In this document: in pieces, positions 13,822-55,045 of the stretch
Layout of the letters: the number at the start of each line of letters is the position of its first letter
Numbering within the stretch: position 1 is the first letter of the stretch
NCBI GenBank assembly: GCA_037447605.1
Contig: CM074815.1
Span: 310,001-374,000, forward strand
Direction: 5' to 3'
Origin: Zygnema circumcarinatum SAG 698-1b
Taxonomy: Eukaryota > Plantae > Zygnematophyceae
DNA length: 64,000 bases
Program-made: the position numbers and the translations under genes
Notes under the pieces: generated by a model
The model's input: only the letters and a program-made list of their open reading frames with translations
Told to the model about the DNA's origin: nothing
Database searches by the model: none

Positions 13822-15026
13822 TCAGAGAATGTTCTCCAATGCCTGAATGAGTCCGTCCACCTCTTCGGGCGTGTTGTAGTGCAGCATGGAAACGCGAACC
13901 ACTCCGTCGTGTTCCGTGTTCACACCAAACTGGTTCGCCAAAACGGAGGCCAAACGGAACGAGTACATGTGTCCGTGCCGCACCGCAAATCCCGCCTCTT
14001 GCATGGCTTTGCTAACTTCCGCCGATTTTTTTGCAAGGTGAACGAAACTTATGGTGGGAACACGCAGTTTCACATCCGTATTTAGAGGTCCAATAACTAT
14101 GACTCCCTCCTTAGAAGCTAAGTATTCCACCAGCTTCTCTTGCAGAGGGCGTTCCATGCTCGTAAACAGTTCAAACGCCCGTTCAATAGAAGCTCGACTG
14201 ACATGTGAAATCTCACCCTCTCCCTTCTCCTCCCTCTCCCCCTCCCTCTCTCCTTCCCTCTCTCCCTCCCTCTCTCCCGACATCAGTTCCAAGTACTTTC
14301 CAACTGCTAGCAGGCCTGCACAGCCTTCATGTGAAACCCCTCCGAGCTCAAACTTGTATGCAAAATCGTCCCCACTAATCCAATAGTGATTGGGACCCTC
14401 CTCCTTTAATTCATCAAATGCGGAATTTGTTCCGAAAAGAGCCGCCATGTGGGGTCCAAACACTTTGTATGTGCTAAAAACGTACCAATCAACACCCCAT
14501 TTTTTGACGTCAATTGCGCGATGGGGTGCAAATGCGACTCCGTCGACTATCACGCGAGCATTTGGACCAGCTTTTTCCTTCACAAGCTGCGAAAAATCGC
14601 AGAAGTGAAAGGCACAGAGAAGGGAGACGCAGAGGGAAAAAAAAAAGGAAAAAAATTAAGTGAAGGATGAGGGAGGGGATCGTTGAACCTGAATAGCGGT
14701 AGTTTTGTGCTTTCAGGGTTGTAAGATGAGTTTTGACAAACATTGGAGGGGAGGGGGGAGAGAGTGAGAGAGAGAGAGAGAAAGAGAGAGAGCACTGGAG
14801 AACAGGAATTGCGGTGAAAGACAGGGGAGGGGAGGAAGATGGATAGAGAGAGTGAGAGGGGAGGGTTGTGGGAGGGAACGAGAGAACGAAGATGGTGGTG
14901 AAAGAACGAGGGAGAGAGGGAGAGAGAGGGAGGAAGATGGATAGAGAGAGAGAGAGGAGGAACGGGAGAACGAAGATGGTGGTGAAAGAGAGAGGGAGAG
15001 AACGAGAGAGAGGGAGGAAAATGGAT

Positions 15027-15075
<49 letters not shown>

Positions 15076-16396
15076 AAGAGCCTCTAATCCTTACATGTCG
15101 CGAAAAGGCTCACCTTCACTACAGCCTCCACATCCGTTATTTCTCCCAAAAGGTTCGACACGTGTGCAAGAGCCACAATTTTGGTCTTTTCTGAGAGCAA
15201 GTTCAACAGTCCGGTCAACGGTGCCTGTTCAAAAGTCTCCGGATCCACCTTCCACAGTTTCAAAGTGGATCCGGCCCTCTTGGCGGCTCGCTCCCACGGC
15301 CCAACATTGGCCTCGTGGGCGGATTCGTGGATGATTACTTCGTCGGAGGGAGTCAATATTCGTGAGTAGCAGTCGGCGATCGTAGCAACCAATTGAGAGG
15401 TAGAGGGGCCTGCAAGAGAGAGAGCGAGAGAGAGAGAGAGAGGGGGAGAGGGAGAGAGAGAGAGGAAGGGAAACTGGAAGGTTGATTTTGGGTTCGAATT
15501 CGGGTCCAAAATTGAAATTACAATTGAATTTAACATTCAAACGTAAGTTTTGAAAAGTTTGGAATTCTGAATTCCGACTCTGAATTGAGAGGTATAGAGA
15601 GAGAGCGAGAGAGTCCGGCGAGACGGTGATAGAGGGAGATCTGAAAATGATCTGAATTTGTGTATAAAATCGAATAAAAAAGCGGAATCTGTGAACGAAA
15701 CCGAACTCACATTCAGATCAAGGCTTGGATTTAGAGTGCATTTTCCAGATCGGAGGTATTAAATGAGCTCAGGATTTCCAGGGTCTTAACGTTTCCAGAA
15801 AACTAAGAGTTTTTTACTTAAAACTTAAACTTTTTAAGGTAGGGATTTTCGGCTTTCAAGATAGTGTTTTTCTACTTTTGAGATCTGCTTGCCAAGATTG
15901 CTTTTAGTATCCAAAATTCCCTTCTTTTTTTTTTTAGGTTTTACAGGGCTACTGGCGGTTTCAAGCCTCCTGAAGCTCTGCAGGAGCTCAAGGATTTTAG
16001 GGTCTAAGCCCTCCAGTGTCCAGGGTTCAGGGTTCAGAGCTCAATTCTCAGTTTCCAGTTTCCAGAGTTCCAGGGTTCAGGGTTTAGAGCCTCGCCTAGA
16101 ACCACCTCCCCCCGGTCCCCCGCGTTCATGAAGACCTTGATAAAGTCATGTGCCGCCTCCACCGTTTCCGTTGCACGGACCGACATCGCGTAGCCCGCGC
16201 CCAACTGAGCGTACGACTGCAGCATGTAGCGCCGCACCGCCTCCGCGACCGCCAGAGGGACCTGGCTGCCACCCGCGTTCTCGAAAAAGGCCAAATTTTG
16301 GGAAATTTTTGGAGACCCATTGAGCGGATTAGAGGCAGAAAAGTAAGGGAATTGCTGGCGGGCTTTTTCGTAAAGGAGGGGGTCGGGGAGGGCCAT
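13822..16396 (-). CDS. Cysteine-desulfurase-like aminotransferase class V (PLP) enzyme, 3 exons
   Basis: Exon 1 16396-16096 (ARQQFP...AFFENAGGSQVP...YAQLGAGY...VVLG); exon 2 15409-15114 (PSTSQL...HESAHEANVGPW...VALAHVSNLLGEITDV); exon 3 14586-13822 (VIVDGVAFAPHRAIDV...DWYVFSTYKVFGPH [PLP lysine]...RVPTISF...GHMYS...VVRVSMLHYNTPEEVD). The motifs resemble the bacterial VC1184-type subfamily. Confidence 0.88.
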
Positions 16397-16439: not shown

Positions 16440-16721
16440 NNNNNNNNNNGGGGGGGGTTCAGGTCCGTACATGGGACGGGATTAGGGTTCAGGGAAATTG
16501 AGTTTAGGAACAGGGAGAGTTTCTGACAGGAAAAAACGCAGTCAGCGAAGGATTGGACAAAGGTCATTATTTTGTAAGTTTATCACTTTTGTATCGCGCG
16601 GGAAAATATTTCAGTGACGGCGAATGTGTCGACAGCAGTTGCGTAGGCCGATCTATGGCTTGACTGCCGCAGTCTCACTGGAACGTAACAGAACTGGCAA
16701 ACTGAGGTAGTAGTTTCCATG

Positions 16722-17791
16722 GCAAACTATTGGTTCGTACAGTTTCTCTCCGCTCACTTTATTGGTCGGTACAGTTTCTCTCCGGTCACCCTATTGGTCA
16801 GTACAGTTTCTCTCCGCGCACCCTATTGGTCGGTACAGTTCCTCTTCGCTCACCCTATTGGTCCGTGCAGTTTCTCTCCGCTCACCCTATTGGTCTGTAC
16901 AGTTTCTCTCAGCTCACCCTATTGATCTGTACAGTTTGTCTTCGCTCACCCTATTGGTCCGTGCAGTTTCTCTCCGCTCATCCTACAGTGGGGGGTCCTC
17001 ATATTTTCCACCCTGTACAGTGCGCTCCCAAGAAATTCGCCCCGATTTTGCCGAAACCACCTTTTTGTACGGTAAGTCAATGTTAGCCGTACTGTTCGTA
17101 CTGTTCGTACTGTTCGTACTAGCCGTACGAGTTGTAGAATCGTCCCACAGGTGTCCGCCGTAAGAGGCGCTCGCTCCTCTCCTCGTCTGCTCCATATACC
17201 ATCCACATCAACCATCTACACGGCAAGCATATTGACTTTAAGAGGTGTTTTGGTATTGAGCGTCTTCCAAGTCGCACAAGGCACCCGTTTTGTTTCATTG
17301 CCGTGGAAGCCCGTCAACCCCCAGCCTAATATTAACTAACTCATTTATTTTATCATGGGTGTGCTCTTCCACTATTGATAATTATAGCATCATCAATGAG
17401 ACGAACAACGCGAAGAGCGGAAAACTACGTGTATGCGATACGATACGGCACGGTACGATAGATACGGTACGATATGGTACGATATGGTACGATATGATAC
17501 GATATTGGACGATACGATACGGAACAGTACGATAGATATTGAACGATACGGTACGATACGATACGATATTAGACGATACGATACGTACGGACAAACATGA
17601 ACTCTAACATGGTACCGAAAGCCTATTGGTAACACGGACCTTATATTTGCAAAATCAATATTTTCGCCCCTTTTTGGCCAATACCATGGCGAAAATATGA
17701 GGACCCCCCACTGTATTGGTCTGTACAATTTCTCTCAGCCCACCCTATTGGTCTGTACATTTTCTCTCCGCTCACCCTATTCGTCCGTACA
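16722..17791 (+). repeat. 32-bp tandem minisatellite, about 11 units, interrupted by a MITE
   Basis: Consensus ctcaccctattggtc(c/g/t)gtacagtttctctccg. Eight units precede the interrupted ninth, which resumes after 17713 and is followed by two more. Confidence 0.9.
16986..17713. mobile_element. Tc1/mariner-type non-autonomous element (MITE), 728 bp
   Basis: Perfect 22-bp TIR CAGTGGGGGGTCCTCATATTTT at both ends, flanked by TA (16984-85 and 17714-15). Removing it restores an intact repeat unit (ctcatccTAttggtctgtac). It has an internal (GATAC)n-like tract and no transposase ORF. Confidence 0.88.
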
Positions 17792-17867
17792 ATTTCACTC
17801 GCACGCCGAGGTCAACCACTAATGATTGGCACACACAACTTGGCAACTAACTTCGTGCCTTTTTCAA

Positions 17868-18816
17868 GGGTAGTGATATTTCCACCCCTTTTTTGGATCC
17901 AAACACCCCTTCCCGGCCGGGCAGATTTCAAAAGGGATCAAAAACGGAAAATGCTTTTTTCACACCTTTTTGGAATCGATACCCACCTTCTTCCGTCGGC
18001 TGATTCTATTTTTGCTAACCAAGGAAAATGATACCCCGTCACCGCATTTTGAATACTGTATCCCGCCTCCCTGAATTTTTTTTTTTGAGGGAAAAAAATA
18101 TCTGCCTGCCCGAATCCGCTCGGAGCGGAAGATCCGTCCGCAACGAGATCGTTCGCGGGTGTCCGTCCTTCACACGTGTGTGTCAATCGCAGCTGTCGAT
18201 TCCCTCGCAGATCGCACAACTGCAAAACACCGTTCGATCTGCAGCCGGGATCAATCTCAGCGAATGGAAAGCACCCACGAGTCCCGCCAAAACCGGACCG
18301 CAAGTGCGAATGCGCGCGTCCCTCGGCCCGAGACCTCGTCATCGTCAGCTCTCAGCCAATCAACATCTGCCACGTGTTAAATTTTTGACGTGGGAAGTTT
18401 TGATTGGTCCAAGCTCTCAATGTACGAAATATTGGGTTCCTCAAAGTTGCGACCGTACGCGACATGTGTACGGACAAACTTTTGAGACGAGTTTGGCGGG
18501 ATACGTGGGCACGTGCCATTCGCTGTGACCGAGCCTGGCTGCAGATCAAATACTGATCTGCCGTGTTGCGATCTGCGAGGGAATCGACGGCTGCGATTGA
18601 CCGCACGCGTGAAAATAAATCAGGTAGGCGGGATATTCAAAATGGGGTGACGGGTTGTCATTTTCCTTGTCGCAAAAATATGATCTGTCGATGGAGGGTG
18701 GGTATCGATTCCAAAAAGGTGTGAAAAAAGCATTTTCCGTTTTTAATTCTTTTTGAAATCTGCCCGGCCGGGAAGGGGTGTTTGGATCCAAAAAAGGGGT
18801 GGAAATATCACTACCC
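17868..18816. mobile_element. Foldback/Mutator-like non-autonomous DNA transposon, about 950 bp, with long TIRs
   Basis: The arms start GGGTAGTGATATTTCCACCCCTTTTTTGGATCCAAACACCCCTTCCCGGCCGGGCAGATTTCAAAA and are inverted over about 210 bp, then again over a second block (about 18170-18290 vs 18490-18610). There is an 8-bp direct repeat TTTTTCAA on both sides (17860-67, 18817-24). Confidence 0.85.
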
Positions 18817-19825: not shown

Positions 19826-26708
<6,883 letters not shown>

Positions 26709-26744
26709 AGGGAGAGGGAGTGGAAGAGATAGAGGGAGAGGTAG

Positions 26745-27001
26745 AGGTAGAGAGAGGGAGAGGTAGAGGTAGCGGTAGAGGTAGAGGTAGGGGTAGAGGT
26801 AGAGGTAGAGGTAGAGGTAGAGGTAGAGGTAGAGGTAGAGGTAGAGGTAGAGGTAGAGGTAGAGGTAGAGGTAGAGGTAGAGGTAGAGGTAGAGGTAGAG
26901 GTAGAGGTAGAGGTAGAGGTAGAGGTAGAGGTAGAGGTAGAGGTAAAGGTAGAGGTAGAGGTAGAGGTAGAGATAGAGGTAGGGGTAGAGGTAGAGGTAG
27001 A
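26745..27001 (+). repeat. (AGAGGT)n hexamer array, about 40 units
   Basis: Directly visible, near-perfect in the centre. Confidence 0.95.
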
Positions 27002-28726
27002 GGAAGGGTTAGAAGTGAACAGCCTACTTTGTTACAAGAGGAACACAAGATGAGGGAAGAGGATAGGGGAGAGGAAATAGGGCCGGGACAGAAAAAGATG
27101 AGATGGAGGAAGAAAGAGAGAGAGAGGTAGAGGGAGGGGAGGAGAGAGTGAGAGAGAGAGAGAGAGGAATGGTGGAGGTACCCCTTCACCTGATTCCATT
27201 ATTGGAAGTGATTTGTAGGTAATTGGAGCCACATTTTATTTTGAATACAAATCCGGGCACCACAACTGTTGCCAGCCACAGAGAGAGAGTGGGAGAGGGA
27301 GAGGGAGAGACTGGTTCATTTGTCCGTACGAGATCACGCCACAAATCTGACAATGACTACAGCCACGTGGCACAAGTCTGGTCCTGATAGGTTCTCCGGA
27401 ATCGTCGCTGGTCAAATTAGTCCTTGTCGGTGCGCACGTGGCGATATTCTACTGGCTCCGTCTCCCACGTTGCCGTACATTGGGATCTTGACCCGCCTGC
27501 GGCAGGGTGAATTGTACGAACGGTGCCGGGCGGACAGATTTGGTCGGCAATTACGACAAATTAAACCGACAGAGCGAGGACCGCTACGCGCACACCCGTC
27601 GAGCCAAAAGCCAATGCGAATCCACCACGTCAACTTTTATGTACACGTGGCACGTCACCATTGGGTACCTGGACGTTTTCGCGGTTGACTTTAGGGACCG
27701 TTGAGAGCCGGAGGGTGACCGTTTTGGGGACCCGCTGGTCCCCAAAAGCTCCCCCCAAAGGATTTAGGGTTCAGAGCGGTCCGCCACGTGTCGTCCTCTC
27801 ATTGGTGGGGCGGTGGGTTTTGGATTATGGGAGAGCGGGAGAGAGAGGGGAAGGTCTATATGCAGAAAAAAAACGAAATTTTTGGTAAGTTTTTTTGGGT
27901 TTTAGATGGGGCAATTGGAAAGGACTGAGGACCCATTTGTATTATTAATATTTTAAAGCTACTACTAAAGCTTTTAGGGTTTTGTAGGGTTTAGGATTTT
28001 AGGGGATCCAGGGTTTAAGAGTTTGAAGGGGTATCAGCATCCAAAGTGGGTGCTTTGAAAACACTTGAAATGCTCTGCATTGTAAATCTTCACTTTTTTT
28101 AAAGTTTGCGTTTTGAAGGGGAGGCCATCCAATAGACTCTAAAAACCCTAAACCCTAAAACCCATAGTCATACTCATCGCCTGCATAGCCCCCCCCTCTC
28201 ATATTTTCACTTCGTGTTGATGCAGACTAAAACCTATCGATCCAATCAAAAACCACCTCCTGACTCTCCTTTTCATCAACAACAACATCTCTCTCTCTCT
28301 CTCTTTCTCTTTGTCTCTCACGCACTCTCTCTCTCCCTCTCTTTCTGTCACTCTCTCTCTCTCTGTCTCTCCCTCTCTGCCTGTCTCTCCCTCTCTGCCT
28401 GTCTCTCACTCTGTCTCTCTCGCTCTCACTATCCGTGTCCCTCTACATTTCTCTAGTCCTCTCCCATCTTATGAACCTCTCTCTCACTCGCTCCTCTTTC
28501 ACTCCCCCGCTCCCGGTACAAGTTTCTTCCTCCCCCCTCCCTCTCTCTCTCCCTCTCCCTCCCCCTCCCTCCCTCCCCCCCTCCCTCTCCCCCTCCCCCT
28601 CCCTCTCCCCCTCCCCCTCTCTCTCCCTCTCCCCCTCATTAGCGATACCGACATCATCACTCCCATCCTCCTCCTGATCATCCTCTCCTTCCGAACATCA
28701 CCATNNNNNNNNNNCCCTCCCTCCCA

Positions 28727-31700
28727 ATGGGCCTCATCTTCTGGAAGGACCACGAGAGCAAGCTCCACTCCAACTCCTCCAATGTGAACAGGGCCTGCCA
28801 CCTCATCACGGACTGCTCCTATCCATGGAGCCCCCCCTCCCTGGACCTTCCAAGACTCAGACTCTGCTCCCTCCCCCCCCAACTAAGCTCCATTGCCAGA
28901 ATAAAAAGACTAACTGTAGAGCACAACTGCCTCAGATCTCTCCCTCCAGGCATCAAAGATCTCTCTCTCCTCGAACATCTCTCTCTCAGAGGCAACATTA
29001 TAAGCAGATGGCCAGAAGTTTTGAGCCATCTTTCGAGCTTACAACATCTGGATTTGAGCAAAAATCGCTTATCTTCAGTGCATAAATCTATTGGAGAGTT
29101 ATCAAAGTTGCAGGTTCTGGCTCTTGATGGGAACCAGCTTTCTCACTTACCTCCGGAAATTGGGAACTTAAAGGAGTTGGAAATTCTGTGGCTTCCTTTC
29201 AATCATCTTCAAGAGATTCCCCTTCAAGTGATGACTTTATCGAATGTTCATACTTTATCTCTCGATTTCAATGAGTTGACTTCTCTCCCACTTCAAGTCG
29301 GCGATGCAGATTTTTCCATCCCAAATTTTTCAGCACATGGAAACCGCTCCGAAGATCTGAAATTTCTGTGCACATTTCCGGAAGATGACATTCAGGAGCT
29401 TTTGCAGATATTTTCAGGAGTTGAAGGGTTTGAAGAATTTGGAGCGGTCCAAGATTGCAATAAGAAGATTGAGCGCATGATCAACCTTCGGCTGGCCTCC
29501 ATGCGAGTTTTTTCCGACAAATTTTATTCGAAAATTTCAGGTTTCGATTCCGCTCGAGCGGAACATTTTGCTCAAAAACTTCTTTACTGGTTTCAGGGCT
29601 CCGCAGGGTTCAGGGCCATTCAAAACCTCAGCGATTCGGAGGAGAGAAGATTTGACCTAATTTCTGCATACTCCAAACTGTCAAGTTCGGAAGTTTTTTT
29701 TTCCAAAAAACCTGCAGAAGAAGAAGAAGAAAAGGAAGATAAAGGAGTTTTTCAGGGGGCAGAAAAGGCACTGAAAAGGACAAGTGATGCCATATTTCAT
29801 GCTTTCATGTTCCCCAAACAGCTGCAAGATTTGAACCTTTCTGGGCTCCAACTCTCCTCTTTGAACAGAGCAACTTTTTTGCTGTTCAACATTTCATGCT
29901 TGGACTTGAGAAACAACAATTTGGGGCCCTGGTTTGAAGAATTTCGATGGGTTTTTTCCATCCTTTATATGCCGAATCTCGAGCAGCTTCATTTGAACGC
30001 AAGCGGAATTTCAGATTTTCCGAAAGAGCTTATGATTTTGCCGAAACTTCAGTGGTCCTCTCTGCTTGAAGGAGCCCCCTCTCTCTCTCTCTCAGAACTT
30101 CAAAAGTGGAGAAAAGAAGAAATTGGGCGACTTAAAGATCCGGACCAAAAAAAATCCGTCGATGAAACTGTCTGGAAAATCGCCGATCTTTTCTTTCGGA
30201 ATGTACTGAATCCGAGCTCTGAAACTTTCCAAATTCTAAATTTGAGTCGTGCGAATTTTCTAAATTCTCTCCCTCCCTTACTCGGAAAATTCGATTTTGT
30301 GAGCGAGCTCAGACTCTCGGGCGGCAGACTGAAAAATTTGGAAAATGTGATTGAAAAAATGGATTTTTTGAAGACTATTTTTGTGGACGATGTGGGGTTC
30401 GAAGCCTGGCCGGAATCTCTGCAGAAAATTTCGCAGCTCGAAATTTTGGATATTTCCGAAAACCGGATTAAGAGTGTTTCGGGAAACCCGGTTTTTCCGC
30501 TTCTGGTTCGATTTCAAGCCAGTAAAAACCAGTTTACGGAAATTCCGGAGGCAATTTTTGCGTGGGAAAAGCTCCAATTTCTGGATTTAGGGTTCAATTT
30601 GATCGGTCGAGTTCCAGAAAACATTTCTTATTCGAAGGAGATTCGGGAGCTTTATTTAAATAACAATAATTTGCGTTCAATTCCGGCGGTTTTAAGCGAA
30701 TTAGAGGAGCTGGAAATTTTGAGACTTGATCACAACCAGTTAAGCTCGCTTCCTTATCAACTCGGAAATTTGAAGAAGCTGAAACTTCTGAACGTGTACG
30801 ACAACCATCTCCTCGTGGTTCCCAAGATTCCGAATCTGGACCGGATTTCAGACCAGATACGTCCGGGTCACACCGTTTCAAAGGGCTTCATTGTGGGGAA
30901 GAACCACTTGCTTTATAAACCTTCTTTGGAAGCATCTCTGCAGAAACCTATTTTTTGGGATTTTTTAACCGGAGAAGATATTGGGGTTTCTCCTATACAT
31001 CACAAATTTGTGAAGCTTTTTGCAGCAGCCCAGGCTTCTAATTCAGCTGAAAACCTCAATAAAGTCATGGATTACTATAACAAATTTCTCGCTGAAAATC
31101 TTACTGTTGAAGAAGCTGCTCTTCAGTTTTTGGCTAGTTCTTTGGTCTATTTGGAAGACAAATTCGGAGAATTTTCCAAGGGAATCGTTTTCAATGTGAA
31201 GGAAGACCTGCAGGGCAATGAAGTAAATTATTACGCTTCAAGGTACAAAATTCTGAATTCAATTAAAAGTGGAGGGACCTGCAACGGGTTCTATTTGGTC
31301 CCCCAAAGCAGCTCAGAAAGTCATAAGGCAAAAATTATCGTTTTCTGTGGGACGAAATTTAACGCTATTCAGTTCCCAAAAAAGATCCCAAAATCGGAGA
31401 GCAAGAGCAAAGCCCTTGTTCTTCCTTCCTCCTTTCTCGCAGAAATTATAAAAAGTGGTGAAAAAATTGGAGTTTCTGAGAAGGAGCAGGAGGAGGAGAT
31501 TAAGCTGGTGATTACAGGACATAGCTATGGAGGATTTTTGGCAGTTCAGAGTTTTGCCAACATTGAAAATTCGATCCATCGTCAGAAAAATGCAAAACTT
31601 GTAACCTTCAACGCTCCGGGAGTGGAAGCGCAGACAATCGATAAAATGTGTGCAGGAATTTCTGAAGATTTTTCCTGGAAAAATAGTCGAATTATTCGGC

Positions 31701-32955
31701 ACGAATTCGATATTGCTCATTTAGCAGGAGAGGTTCATTGTCCCGGAATTGTGCTTTATACAAATGACTTAATCGAGGCTCCAATGGAGTCGGTAGAGAG
31801 TGAAATTTTGAGCACATCGCCGGACCTTGCAGCTGCATGCAAAATGCTGACCGTTTACGCGGGGTTCTATGCAAGAAAAATTGCTCGTGGTTCCCTATCC
31901 CAGGTTGAGATGACATCGCTTGGAAGCTCCTTTTTAGAATGTATGGGGAATTTGGCCTATGCCCATACAGTTCCTTCCTTTGCTTTGAGGCAAATGCATG
32001 GACTGAAGCCCTTAATATCGAGGGCAGATCACCATTCTGCGGCGCATATGGGAGTGGAGGGAGGGGGGTTTGGGAGGGAGGGGGAGCGGGTGCAGGCGCT
32101 GGCAGAGGAGTGGGTGAGCTACTTCAGGGTGAAGGGGGAGAAGGGGGGGGAGGGGGGAGGAGGGAAGTAGGGAGGGAGGGAGGGAGGGGAGAGGAGGGGA
32201 GGAGGAGAGGAGGGAGGAGGGAGGGGGAAGGTGGGAAGAGGAAAAGAGGAGGGGAGGGAGGGGAAGGAAAGAGGGGGAGGGGAAGGAGGGAGGAGCAAGA
32301 AGGAGGGACGAGGAGGGAGTAGGAGCAGGAGGACGGAGGAAGAGGGAGGAGGTAATGAGCGGAGTGCCGCAGACTCGCACACGGAGAGAGGGAGGAAATG
32401 GGGGAAAGGGGGTGGGGGGAAGAAGGCAGGAAAGAGGGAGGATTGGAATAGAATCCGCAGAAATTTCCAGATTCTGTCTACGACTGTTGAAGCTTTTAGG
32501 GCTTCCCTTCTGCCTTTAAAAAGACATGTCTACAACTTTTCTTCCATAGTGCTGCAACGACGGATGGTTGGATAACGTAATTTTTTTCCTTCTTGGGCGT
32601 TTACATTCTGAAGACGATGTTTCCAGTGAGTTGGAGGAAATTTACAGCTCAAACGCACAGGCTTGTCAGGCAGGAGGTGAGTGGAGGCTAAGGACTGCTC
32701 TCTCTTTCCCTCCCTCTCTCTCCCTCTCTCTCCCTCTCTCTCCCACTCTATGCCACGTCTGTTGTCATTCTGCAACTCTCTCTATATTTAAGCTCCCGTC
32801 TTGCTTTTTATACCGCAAATTTATGCCACTCTCTCTCTCTCTCACTCCCTCTCTGTAGCTCACGCCCCCCTCTCTCCTCTCACCTTCTCTCATCATTTCT
32901 TTCCGTTTTACTTTATGATTCCTTCACAGGTGGTGGAGGCAGTCCTGCAAGTTGA
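28727..32955 (+). CDS. Large LRR protein (three LRR blocks) with a C-terminal class-3-lipase-like alpha/beta hydrolase
   Basis: 3.4-kb ORF (28727-32170) with LxxLxLxxNxLxxLP repeats, then IIVFCGT...LVITGHSYGG (31517-34)...LVTFNAPG...RHEFDIAH...AHT. A probable donor GG|GTGAGC at 32113 joins in frame to small exons 32550-32676 (CCNDGWLDNVIFFLLGRL...) and 32930-32955 (stop). These 3' exons are tentative. Confidence 0.8.
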
Positions 32956-34574
32956 CCTGTTCACTATTTATCTCTTTCTACTTGTTGCAAAATGCAGAAA
33001 ACCCTGAAATAGATGCAGGATTCTTTGGCAGCATAACTGCTATTTAAAAACTTCGATTTTTTCATGATTTTTAATTGGGTTCTTTAGCCCTTATTAGGGT
33101 CTGATGGCTTTACTTAGACTTATGATAAAATCGCTCGCTTGCAGTGGTCCTGTTGTTGGCAGGTTCCATGTCAGTAATGAAGTTAGTTCAAGAGATGAAA
33201 ATTATAGGCGACTCTGACTTACAATATTCGAGACGATTTTGACCCGAACCTGATATAGCTTATGGGGGACAATTTTTCCACACATAGCGAGTCATTTACA
33301 GTAATTACAAAAGTAATTAATCTTCCCATATCAACCAAATGCCATAAGTTTTCACATGGCTGCATGTTGGCATTTCTACATGCATGGGAAGACCATGCAT
33401 GCCACCCATGCATGCGCATGTAGTCATACTTTTTTCTGAACAATGTATTCTCTGTTTAAGATGTGATTCCATGTCATTCAAATGCGTTCCTTGGTCACCT
33501 GAATGCATCTTGTAATACTTGTTGCATCAGTTCAGTTTAACGGAACCTGCGTTCCATGAGTTCATTTGATGGGCAATTGCGGCGTCTGTCCAACATTGAT
33601 CCGTAGATGTCCTTGTTCCGTAAGCCAATAACAATTCTGCTGCAAATATAAGTGGCATTGAGTGTGAGAGAGCGAGAGAGAGGGGGGAGGAAAGAGAGGA
33701 AGAGAGTGGGAAGGGAGTGTGGACGACGAGAAGAGGAGAGAAGAGGGAGGGAGAGAAGGGGGCGGGGGGGAAGTGTGGGAATTAGAAGTGGGGGGAGAGA
33801 GAGGTAGAGAAAGAGGGAGACGAGAGTGAGAGGCAGATAGAGGAGAGAGAGAGGATGAAGGTGAGAGGGGGGGGGGAAAGGTTTAGAGGTCTAAAGGTCT
33901 GAAGCTGAACTTCTAGGTATGGCACAATACACGGTACCCCTTTGGGATGGTATGGCTGACTATACTGTGGCGTCTACACTATATCTATGTATACATCTCC
34001 CTCTCCCCCCCTCTCTCTCTCTCTCCTACCTACCTGTCTCTGCACTGTCTATACACCTCACACACTCTCTCGCACTCTCTCGCTCTAGCTCTCACTCACT
34101 TCCTCTTTCTCTCCTCTCTGCACGCCAATCGCCAAGCCCCCTTACTCCACACCTCTCCCCACCTTTTCCTCCCGTCCCTATATTTTCCTCTCGCTGTCCT
34201 ATCCCTCCCTCCCTCCCACCTTTTCCCCACTTCCATCTTCCCCCCACTCCCCTCTCTCCCTCTCTCCCTCCCTTCCTCCCTCTCCCTCTCCATCTCCCTC
34301 TCTCCCTCTCTCTCCCCCTCCCTCCCTCTCTCTCTCTCCCACTCCCTCCCTCCCTCTCTCTCTCTCTCTCCCCCTCCCTCCCTCTCTCTCTCTCCCCCCC
34401 TCCCTCCCTCTCCCTCCCTCNNNNNNNNNNCTCTCCCCCTCCCTCCCTCTCTCTCTCTCCCCCCCTCCCTCCCTCTCCCTCCCTCCCCCTCCCTCCCTCT
34501 CTCTCTCTCTCTCTCCCTTCCTCCCTCTTCCTGCCCCTCTCTCCCCCTCTCTCCCTCCCTCTCTCTCTCCCCCT

Positions 34575-34613
<39 letters not shown>

Positions 34614-34620
34614 TCTCTCC

Positions 34621-35922
34621 CTACAAGTTCCCGAGGCTGGGCGTCTCCCGGCCCACAAGGCGGTGCACGAGCTGCGCCCCTTTGGGCGAGAGCGGTTCGA
34701 AGAGGTCCGTACGAGTCACGATGCCGACCACCACCCCCTCGTGGTCCACCACGGGCAGCCGGTGGACCTGCCCGAAAAAAAAAAATGGGTCAATCAAAGA
34801 AAACTAGGAGACAGCCACAACACCATCATCATCAACAACAGGTGATTTCCAAGGGGAGGGCATAAACCCTAATTAAGGTTTTAGGAATTAGGGTTTTAGG
34901 TCACCTTGTGCTTCAACATCAACGCCGCCGCGTAAGCGACAGGGGCGCCGGAGACGATGACGAAAGCAGGTGACGTCATCACTTCACTGAAAATCAACAT
35001 AGAAACCGGCAAGGAACAGTGAAAAAGAGAGGCTTATACCCCATTTGGATCCATTCTTTATGGAATTTAGGCCCACACGCCTTTAGATTCAATACCAGAG
35101 AGTGTTCGAGCTTCCTAAGGCTCTAGAGCATTATGATTTTAAAAATATCAACCTATAAGGTCGATATTTATCCATTCACATTGAAACATGACTGACATGT
35201 TAAGTTTTTTTTTTTTTTACCACACCTGACCGTGGTGGCGGGCAGGCTGCCTGCCCTCCCCCTCGCATAGCGCGCCACGTCAATATTGGAAATGATGCCC
35301 ACGCAGCGCCCGGCGGAGTCCACCACGGGCAGCCCCGTGAAATGTTCGAACTGCCCGAGAATGCTCTCGAGGGTGCTGTCCTCCGTCGTCGTCAGCGCCT
35401 GCACTCCCTCAAAACCCTAAAAACCCTAAAAACCCCAGAGCCCAGAGGACCTCCAAAACCAAAATTTATTATTATTTACTTATTTATTTTAAATTAACAT
35501 CATAATCCATGCATTATGACCACTTCACAAGTATGCAATCTTTTATTTATTTTTTTTCAAAATTTAATAACCTTAATTTAATCTAATTTATTTTTTCCTC
35601 TCACCGGCCGACTCATGACGCTATCCACCGGTCCGTACGGATCCTCTTGAAGCGTCTCCGACTTGTCAATGGCGCGCCTGTCCTCCTCCGCCGCCGCCAC
35701 AACGCCGCCAGCCAATGCGGGGGCGCCACGTGTCCCCCTCCCCTTCCAGAACTCCGCGCCCTTAAACCCTCCCCTCGTCCTCTCCCTCGCAGAAAGGACA
35801 AAAGCGGAGGGGCCTTGCTCGGATGGGCGGCCGTTCCATGTGGCTCCGTTAGCGTTTCCGTTGGGCGCAACGGCGCAGCGGGCGGGCATGGAGAGGGCCA
35901 CGCTGTGGAGGGAGAGAGCCAT
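34621..35922 (-). CDS. CBS-pair protein with a transit-peptide-like N-terminus (CBSX-like), 4 exons
   Basis: MALSLHSVALS...DSVMSRP | ALTTTEDSTLESILGQFEHFTGLPVVDSAGRCVGIISNIDV...TTVS | EVMTSPAFVIVSGAPVAYAAALMLKHK | VHRLPVVDHEGVVVGIVTRTDL...GNL*; splice phases consistent. Confidence 0.88.
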
Positions 35923-53300: not shown

Positions 53301-53679
53301 CAGGACCTGAAAATAGACACAATCGTTCAAATCGATCAACATTCAATTCTCAAATCCCGAGAATAAAAATCACCTTCTTCTCAGTTGGCCAACTTCATCA
53401 ATCGCATCGATAGGTGGTATTGAATGTTGACATGCTTACTCAAGCCTAACCTGCTGTCCTTCTTTCAAAAGGGCACTTCTGCATGCTTGTCTTCTCTCAA
53501 TTGTCTTTCTGCTAAACATGAAGCCCTCTTGCACTCACTTAATTTCTGTGTGTAATTGATCCCTCCCCCTCCCCCCTAACCCCTACCCCCTACCCCCTCT
53601 CTACCCCGCTCCCTCTCTCCCACACTCCCTCCCCCATCCCGCCCCCTCCCTCCCCTTCTCTCTCCTCCCTCGCTCCCCC

Positions 53680-53733
<54 letters not shown>

Positions 53734-55045
53734 TACATGTGTATGTACCTGGGCTGAGGTCTGGCGAAGTTTGATCAAGTCCTCATTCATCTCCTCCACC
53801 GTCTGGTCGAGAAGCTTCTCCGGGTCCTCTGCAGCAGTCACTGCTGCATTTGCGTATGACTGCAAAAACAGGTCATAAAATCGGTGACCACATACACGAG
53901 TTAAACAACCATTACAACAGTCTTCCAAGGAAATTTGTCAAATTCAAACAGAATAATATCAGATTATGTACCCATTACATACATGTAAAACATGTCAGCC
54001 TTACCTTCACAATGCGAACGACCCGGTCAAAAAGGTTCATTTGTGAAGCCAAAGCCCCTCCTCCAGGTGCCGCTCCCTCCCAAAAGGAGGCAGCCAATGA
54101 CCGGCTGCTCTCTGCTACAAGCCAACGAAGGCACCAAGGCAAACAAAATAAACAAATTAAAAACAAGGGGAAGATCAAATTTAAATGCTTGATTGCTCGA
54201 AATTTACCGGAAAAAATGTAGTTTTCAATACTTGCAGAGAAAGAAAAAGCGAAGATTGACTTCGCAATTTGGAAGAAAAGTTGAAGAGAGGAAGGATAAC
54301 GGAAGCAGCGGAGGCCGAATTAAAAAAACAACAGAGAGAGAGGGGGAAAGAGAGAGAGAGAAAAAGAAAGAGAGGGAGACCTGCCTCGTACCATAGCCAT
54401 TCACTTCACAGGAAACAAGGATGCGATAACTCATACAAGCTTCAGGCGAATTTAAAGACCTAATACAGCTTCAAGCATACAGAGAGAGAGGGAGAGAGAG
54501 AAAGAGAAGAAGAGAGATAAAGCGAGAGAGCACAGCACTTCATGCCCTCTACACAGCTCCCACAGTTCATCAAGCAGCAAAATTCAAGCTCAATTCCGCC
54601 AAGTTGTGCTGCATCCACTAATCCATCCATCGCCGTTCGTCATAGACCCGCTTTTAGTTTCCAGTTCCAGTTCCAGTTCCACTTTCAGTTCACATCCACT
54701 TTAACTTCCACATCCACATCCAGTTCCAATTCCAGTTCCAACTTCAGCTTTAGGTTCATGCCTGCCACGTTTCATTGTATTCATTCGTTCAAGTGCCTGA
54801 GCGAACCCTGCTTGAGCCAGCTCACCTCCGCCATCAAAGAATCCCGAATGCAGGGACCGCCTGCAAAAGCTGCTCAAGGAAGCGCCAACCGCCGCTTGGG
54901 GGCTGGAGGCCCTGAACCCTAATCCCTGGCCAGGGCTCCTGCAAGTGTTTGCCGCGCTCCGGTCATGGCTGCCCTTGGAGAGCGCCTTCTGCAGAGAGCT
55001 CGGAGCAGTTATCGCGCCAGCGGCGGCGAAGCTGGTGGCAGCCAT
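50334..55045 (-). CDS. VIPP1: Vesicle-inducing protein in plastids 1 (PspA/IM30, ESCRT-III-like), 11 exons
   Basis: Transit peptide, then [12 protein letters not shown] | SYANA...[27 protein letters not shown] | [10 protein letters not shown]...ADDW | [24 protein letters not shown] | ...KLISNTR | [24 protein letters not shown] | [27 protein letters not shown] | [10 protein letters not shown] | [17 protein letters not shown] | GELPPGR...[15 protein letters not shown] (VIPP1-specific C-terminal helix). All introns GT-AG. Confidence 0.96.

Follow-up and report, generated by a model that had tools for sequence, protein, structure and literature searches.

A Zygnema gene predicted to join cytosolic leucine-rich repeats to a class-3 lipase of bacterial-type kinship

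Fungal NLRs, that is, nucleotide-binding leucine-rich repeat (LRR) receptors, with lipase or patatin domains at their N-termini are known. Liverworts have α/β-hydrolase-NB-LRR proteins, in which the hydrolase sits at the N-terminus of an NB-ARC protein (PMC7145615), and brown algae have LRR-ROCO candidates, which are repeat-sensor receptors (PMC3341825, PMC11378527). Here we describe a gene of the alga Zygnema circumcarinatum SAG 698-1b, lying in a stretch of 64,000 nucleotides (GenBank assembly GCA_037447605.1, contig CM074815.1, positions 310,001 to 374,000 of the forward strand; hereafter the window), whose product is best read as a soluble, cytosolic, multi-LRR protein with a C-terminal class-3 (Tle-like) serine lipase that is predicted to be catalytically competent. 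Like the ROCO receptors, and like the NLRs and other STAND proteins (signal transduction ATPases with numerous domains), this protein couples a sensor made of repeats to an effector domain, but it has no NTPase switch. Thus, although an LRR sensor is present, assignment to the NLR/STAND class was rejected for want of any NB-ARC, NACHT or AAA match or a Walker A motif. Likewise, it was not accepted as a ROCO protein, since neither Roc nor COR was matched, although three of its best matches through the LRRs (P0020, P0029 and P0053) have both.

A class-3 lipase-like fold in an immune context is also seen in EDS1, PAD4 and SAG101, to which the algal lipase model compares with Z scores of 8.3–8.9. 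These proteins, however, contain no LRRs and partner with separate NLRs, whereas the algal protein has an intact triad. Membership of the EDS1 family was rejected, because no EP-domain match was obtained at E ≤ 1 and the protein runs for about 30 residues after its His before the low-complexity tail begins. The plant DAD1-like phospholipases A1 (PLA1; 2yij, 7x0c and 7x0d) and the fungal lipases and FaeA (3tgl, 1tia and 2ix9) have the same fold and catalytic apparatus as the algal domain, with profile E values of 4.5e-8 to 5e-5 to plant PLA1 and fungal class-3 lipases and VIA-align Z scores of 12–13. Yet those enzymes are single-domain proteins, secreted or plastid-targeted, without LRRs or the EEAALQ extension described below, and the kinship is confined to the motifs of the superfamily.

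The only relatives of the lipase half detectable by sequence are bacterial Tle-like, class-3 toxins (PF26363/PF01764), an example of which is the lipase effector of the Enterobacter cloacae type VI secretion system (T6SS; 9cys/7ubz). Common to both sides are a helical extension with EEAALQxLA, FxGT, GHSxGG, TFNAPG, the Asp and the His. The differences are equally clear. The bacterial proteins stand alone or are fused to eCIS_core or Pkinase and none carries LRRs, whereas the algal one is LRR-fused and cytosolic; the algal lipase has an extra insertion of about 60 amino acids before the His; and identity does not exceed 30%. Pfam found no delivery domain in the algal protein, and its gene neighbours are ordinary split eukaryotic genes with no immunity-gene partner among them. 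The algal protein is nearest to, and might work like, the bacterial Tle-like phospholipases. A possible precedent for the reuse of a toxin-type enzyme gene by a eukaryote is offered by the ‘dae’ genes of ticks and mites, which are reportedly derived from T6SS amidase effectors; the Dae proteins, though, are secreted single-domain amidases and not LRR fusions.

The lipase half and its relatives

As modelled, the C-terminal domain is a class-3 lipase, on the combined evidence of the Pfam threshold, the nucleophile elbow, the order of the Asp and His, and the fold. Lipase_3 (PF01764) matches amino acids 919–981 with 26.2 bits, the gathering score being 22 (E 8.3e-6). No GxSxG other than the GHSYG at 931–935 occurs anywhere in the sequence. 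In a 13-sequence family alignment (A1), the residues G875, G931, S933, G935, P964, D995 and H1080 are invariant, and S933 and D995 remain so in a 19-sequence alignment. The predicted catalytic triad is Ser933-Asp995-His1080. A sequence-only reading of this DNA had claimed the motifs IIVFCGT, GHSYGG, TFNAPG, HEFDI and AHT together with a Ser-Asp-His triad; all of the motifs were found, and the family alignment agrees with the putative triad, in its canonical order. Of the two His candidates which that reading had put forward, AHT stood, H1080 being conserved in A1, and DHH (1101–1102) was rejected as the catalytic His, because it is not conserved in the same alignment. The segment that follows His1080, VPSFALRQMHG, matches VPQLAIRQLRG of the bacterial relative P0002, and the IIVFCGT strand is presumably the equivalent of FRG[ST], the strand that forms the oxyanion hole in class-3 lipases.

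The class-3 fold, which the sequence-only reading had also proposed, was borne out by structure prediction and comparison. As a single sequence, the lipase half gave a best E of 0.08 in a search of PDB sequences, and AlphaFold2 (AF2) without an alignment returned a predicted local distance difference test score (pLDDT) of 35. With the family alignment, the AF2 model reached a predicted template modelling score of 0.70, with model residues 14–274 as its confident core, and the family profile matched solved class-3 lipases, with E values of 4.5e-8 for 1tia/5ch8 and 1.2e-7 for feruloyl esterase A. The nucleophile Ser and the Asp align with those of the solved enzymes, Ser933 falling on the GHSLG of 1tia. 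Foldseek assigned a probability of 1.00 to FaeA, the Rhizomucor and Thermomyces lipases, the T6SS lipase effector 9cys and plant PLA1. In VIA-align, 69 chains scored Z ≥ 8, the class-3 lipases among them at 11–12.8 over 180–213 residues; individual scores were 12.8 for 2ix9 (root-mean-square deviation 3.6 over 182 residues), 12.6 for 7x0d, 12.4 for the Rhizomucor lipase 3tgl, 10.9 for 9cys and 8.3–8.9 for EDS1/PAD4. By shape, the neighbours in the ESM-Atlas are clusters of bacterial Tle-like phospholipases (PF26363).

Catalysis of EDS1 is dispensable, and the algal domain might be read in the same fashion as EDS1, PAD4 and SAG101, as a lipase-like adaptor that does no catalysis, the class-3 fold serving as a binding platform to which the LRRs add further surfaces. 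The Z scores of its EDS1-family fold neighbours, together with a profile E of 1.1e-5 to 8b28, are in keeping with such a role. We consider it improbable, however, as the Ser, Asp, His and oxyanion strand are all kept, and conserved with the bacterial relatives, as there is no EP domain, and as true lipases outscore the EDS1 family in Foldseek, VIA-align and the profile search alike.

Two further elements characterize the predicted catalytic domain. The first is its N-terminal helical extension, where the algal motif EEAALQFLASSLVY has the consensus EEAALQxLAxxLAY in the bacterial relatives; because this extension with the EEAALQ motif is common to the relatives, the lipase half forms a distinct subfamily. 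The second is the insertion of about 60 amino acids mentioned above, which is missing from all bacterial relatives. A helix of moderate hydrophobicity (ILSTSPDLAAACKMLTVYA) lies within it, and the insertion could serve as a lid or make contact with a membrane.

The relatives themselves are few. An exhaustive phmmer search with amino acids 741–1109 against 1.84 billion protein representatives (cut-off E ≤ 1e-3) returned only 16 matches, 308–596 amino acids long, the best with an E of 2.6e-12 at 30% identity, and LRRs were present in none of the 16. The ten best belong to small clusters, mostly metagenome singletons, and not one of the ten bears a eukaryotic name. All six relatives whose gene neighbourhoods were inspected lie in compact, bacterial surroundings (Table 1). 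A word search restricted to the lipase region gave no match, and one with the A1 profile retrieved only one member of A1 itself; no algal relatives were found by way of metagenome contigs; and neither P0002 nor the AcrB-like neighbour of P0001 had a relative among 185,579 species genomes.

From their layout, several of the bacterial relatives look like delivered toxins or effectors. In particular, the eCIS_core fusion of P0014 and the DotU/IcmF vicinity of P0002 point to such delivered-toxin roles. P0009, on the other side, is fused to a kinase, so that the N-terminal partner of the lipase module differs from one lineage to another. Descent of the lipase half from the EDS1/PAD4 or the plant PLA1 lineage was rejected, its only sequence relatives being these rare bacterial proteins. 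Judged by this kinship, the lipase half is of bacterial type, and the simplest inference is that the module was acquired by the alga from a bacterium.

Repeat blocks and domain architecture

Ahead of the lipase domain, the protein holds about 19–20 LRRs by motif scan, arranged in three blocks of about 7, 3–4 and about 9 repeats. On the full protein, Pfam reports LRR_8 (4e-23), LRR_4 (6.5e-21), LRR_14 (1.2e-19) and also LRR_1. In block 1 the LRR cores fall at amino acids 59, 82, 105, 128, 151 and 174, spaced by exactly 23 residues, and a degenerate repeat lies near 36; block 2 has cores at 389 and 418 and a further one near 366; and block 3 has cores at 501, 525, 571, 616, 639, 662 and 685, with weaker repeats in between. 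Neither of the two spacers matches a Pfam family, and spacer 1 (searched as amino acids 195–365) gave no lead to a solved structure or an Atlas entry beyond LRR context effects.

The repeats are of the 23-residue cytosolic type seen in SHOC2, Rsu1 and ROCO proteins, and the feature neighbours in the Atlas are SHOC-2/Rsu1-like LRR proteins. A word search with the full-length protein gave 124 matches, all of them through the LRRs and none with Lipase_3, the best being the LRR-Roc/COR-TIR protein P0020, which is 31% identical to the query over 30% of its length. No match to NB-ARC, NACHT, AAA, TIR, kinase or death-fold domains was obtained from Pfam on the full protein, which nowhere contains a Walker A motif. 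Averaged over 19 residues, hydropathy peaks at 1.01, with neither a transmembrane segment nor a signal-peptide-like core to be seen; a secreted or membrane protein was accordingly rejected, as there is no hydrophobic segment.

These results are in line with what the sequence-only reading had made of the protein as a whole. Three LRR blocks with spacers between them were recovered by Pfam and the motif scan, and the lack of a P-loop, kinase, signal peptide or transmembrane segment was confirmed by Pfam, the Walker A scan and hydropathy. That reading, which knew of no characterised LRR(x3)-Lipase_3 protein in plants, had further put this one forward as a candidate for an undescribed protein and had called for a search for the architecture. 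No protein that combines LRRs with this lipase was found, either among the 1.84 billion representatives or among the word-search matches, and the layout is described nowhere in the literature searched. Neither class-3 lipases nor LRR domains are out of the ordinary; it is their fusion that is undescribed as far as we searched. The enzyme half is otherwise seen, within those libraries, only in rare bacterial toxin-like proteins.

Proposed mechanism and possible roles

Taking the two halves together, we consider it rather probable that the gene is real and encodes an active lipase, tethered to LRRs and bacterial-type in its ancestry, judging from structural and mechanistic features predicted from its sequence. 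We propose an exchange of the lipase module with bacteria, in the simplest case by transfer from a bacterium to the alga; the module would then have been fused, in the algal lineage, to cytosolic LRRs of eukaryotic type. By binding a protein or some other ligand, the LRR arcs might either bring the lipase to the place where it acts or restrain it until binding occurs. The enzyme would then hydrolyse acyl esters of membrane lipids, by phospholipase A or lipase chemistry, and the outcome could be a lipid signal or membrane damage. With no NTPase switch in the protein, the LRRs would have to act on the lipase directly if they gate it at all.

Several facts weigh against this proposal. First, the Lipase_3 match is barely over its threshold. 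Second, the model is of low confidence from residue 275 on, and the insertion and the His1080 region, which lie there, have pLDDT below 50. Third, the nearest relative of the lipase half is only 30% identical, and in the maximum-likelihood tree, a star whose branches are very long, the alga falls outside any supported bacterial clade. Fourth, relatives could exist in other, unannotated algae, as the proteins of the species itself are evidently absent from the libraries, given that no self-match appeared, even in an exact look-up of the 1147-residue sequence in public assemblies.

As to what an LRR-tethered lipase would do, a role in defence, in which one protein would be both sensor and executioner, is put forward tentatively. 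The tilt towards defence comes from the toxin-like kinship of the enzyme module. Nearly as likely is a non-immune role in lipid signalling or remodelling, in which LRRs of the SHOC2/Rsu1/PIRL-like kind would act as a scaffold and place a PLA1-like activity at a complex or membrane. Its possible outputs include the release of fatty acids or oxylipins, the turnover of lipids under stress, and a part in conjugation or development. The LRRs are indeed of the type found in cytosolic proteins of the Ras group and in scaffolds, plant PLA1 structures (7x0d, 2yij and 7x0c) match the fold with Z scores of 12.3–12.6 as against 10.9 for 9cys, and there is no mark of immunity in the shape of a TIR, NB-ARC or death-fold domain or a PADLOC match. 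On the anti-phage side, the defence models of PADLOC-DB returned no family for either the whole protein or the lipase half. What speaks against the scaffolded enzyme is that the relatives of the lipase are rare bacterial toxin-type lipases rather than plant PLA1s, and that neither phmmer nor the full-length word search found an orthologue among annotated plants.

A more specific form of the defence role is more doubtful still, namely that a lipase fused directly to LRR arcs, with no NTPase, represents a family of immune receptors in which the ligand frees a membrane-attacking lipase. If true, this would be a design of innate immunity apart from both NLRs and signalling of the EDS1 type, and would be for lipases what the ‘dae’ genes of ticks are for amidases.

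Should the algal protein be expressed and defensive, it would mean that algae close to the ancestry of land plants tried sensor-executioner proteins without the NTPase switch of NLRs, that the lipase fold entered the immunity of that lineage independently of EDS1/PAD4, and that photosynthetic eukaryotes can turn a weapon of bacteria to their own use. The more modest scaffolded enzyme would still be a testable case of direct enzyme control by LRRs.

Gene model and genomic setting

The gene is an uninterrupted, single-exon open reading frame (ORF) of 1147 amino acids, exactly as the sequence-only reading had placed it, and it is the sole long ORF of the 64-kb window that is not of low complexity, the other long ORFs being translations of CT/GA microsatellites (Table 1). 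A tblastn search found no second copy within the window. Because of the 10-N gap 12 nucleotides upstream, the 5' end is unanchored and rests on the first ATG. At the 3' end, the G/E-rich tail is probably read-through of an intron or untranslated region rather than protein; it contains in-frame donor-like sites at 32054, 32114 (TGG|GTGAGC) and 32129 (AGG|GTGAAG). Enumeration of 3' splice forms gave dozens of open combinations, and the predicted catalytic domain is intact in every one of them.

Table 1. Coordinates of the algal gene and its parts (positions in the window; aa, amino acids) and settings of the bacterial relatives of its lipase half
Feature	Position	Strand	Remarks
10-N assembly gap	28705..28714		12 nucleotides upstream of first ATG
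LRR-lipase ORF, 1147 aa	28727..32170	+	informative coding portion stops near 32053
LRR block 1, aa ~36-196, ~7 repeats	28832..29314	+	23-residue period, consensus LxxLxLxxNxLxxLPxxIxxLxx
Spacer 1, aa 197-364, charged, presumably helical	29315..29818	+	contains EEEEEKEDK run
LRR block 2, aa ~365-445, 3-4 irregular repeats	29819..30061	+	from motif scan and Pfam
Spacer 2, aa 446-500, charged	30062..30226	+	
LRR block 3, aa 501-707, ~9 repeats	30227..30847	+	last four (616-685) regular 23-mers
Class-3 lipase domain (as modelled) with family-specific N-terminal helical extension, aa 741-1109	30947..32053	+	unit common to bacterial relatives
Helical-extension motif, aa 795-808	31109..31150	+	kept in bacterial relatives
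IIVFCGT strand, aa 870-876	31334..31354	+	Gly875 invariant
Nucleophile elbow GHSYGG, aa 931-936	31517..31534	+	Ser933 codon 31523-31525
TFNAPG, aa 960-965	31604..31621	+	same as consensus of bacterial relatives; Pro964 invariant
Asp995 in HEFD (HEFDI from aa 992)	31709..31711	+	invariant; aligned by profile to NDPVPK Asp of Penicillium lipase 1tia
Alga-specific insertion of ~60 aa, aa ~1012-1075	31760..31951	+	between Asp strand and His; low-confidence model
His1080 in AYAH-T (AYAHT from aa 1077)	31964..31966	+	invariant in alignment A1
G/E-rich ORF tail through purine (G/A-rich) microsatellite	32054..32170	+	from ~aa 1110; includes GGEGGGGK
Possible small 3' exons	~32550/32614/32631-32677 and 32930-32955 (within 32550..32955)	+	many splice combinations possible
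Relative P0001			neighbours: efflux pump (AcrB-like) and amino-acid permease
Relative P0002	L003 6001-7086		DotU and IcmF-related (tssL/tssM-like) genes 3 kb off, P0002 upstream; Ser/Thr kinase upstream
Relative P0006			RecG and GreA nearby; carries PF26363
Relative P0009	L004 5001-6791		N-terminal eukaryote-like Ser/Thr kinase (Pkinase 2.1e-20) fused to Lipase_3; among permeases
Relative P0014	L006 1772-3394		eCIS_core (toxin-cargo) and Phospholipase-like fusion, PF26363; beside ParAB
Relative P0016			adjoins ankyrin-repeat protein

The LRR-lipase is intronless over 3.3 kb, while its neighbour genes are split into exons, and its GC content at third codon positions (GC3) is 0.45 (0.40 in the lipase half) as against 0.43–0.84 in four neighbouring exon segments, all of these being small samples. 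One might therefore suspect a silent or decaying copy, acquired or duplicated recently, whose frame is still open although it is neither expressed nor functional. An intronless gene in an intron-bearing genome, and a GC3 at the low end of the neighbours' range, again from small samples, would both suit such a copy. We nevertheless regard it as unlikely, as a stop-free frame of 3.3 kb with all catalytic motifs is unexpected for neutral sequence.

Still less probable is an origin by contamination with bacterial DNA or by chimeric assembly. A gap-bounded piece of 5.7 kb (28715–34420) carries the gene, with the 10-N gap at 28705–28714 on one side and another at 34421–34430 on the other, and the relatives of its lipase half are bacterial, both of which would be expected of foreign sequence. 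Yet GA/CT microsatellites of the host lie directly 3' of the ORF on the same piece, the LRR part is of the eukaryotic cytosolic type, and no bacterial protein more than 30% identical was found among the 1.84 billion representatives. Moreover, sequencing runs from two separate studies under one organism label contain the gene, with 88–94% of its words present. It is the host-type microsatellites on the same piece and the words in the runs of two studies that make contamination very unlikely.

Other genes of the window bear on the nature of the host. A class-V aminotransferase gene (cysteine desulfurase-like; 13825–15536, minus strand), matched by Aminotran_5 at 2.7e-19 and 1.8e-16, has at least two exons split by an intron; a CBS-domain exon lies at 35171–35416 (minus strand, 6.3e-8); and a PspA/IM30 (VIPP1-like) exon at 53593–53937 (minus strand, 2.6e-10). 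Such split Aminotran_5, CBS and PspA/IM30 exons fit a plastid-bearing, intron-bearing nuclear genome of the green lineage, and on these exons rests our conclusion that the host is a green-lineage alga and not a land plant.

The window is also dense in CT/GA (and GAG/CTC-type) microsatellites, for example at 25569–27190, 28214–28700, 32050–32450 and 33919–34845, besides many others. They yield long spurious ORFs on both strands, translating as PLPLPL, GRGRGR or EGEGE, and often have gaps of 10 to 100 N inside them. Finally, ORF pieces recur on the plus strand at 16689–18030, and peptides such as SPYWSVQFLSAHPIG come back in them, which suggests a tandem or dispersed repeat element.

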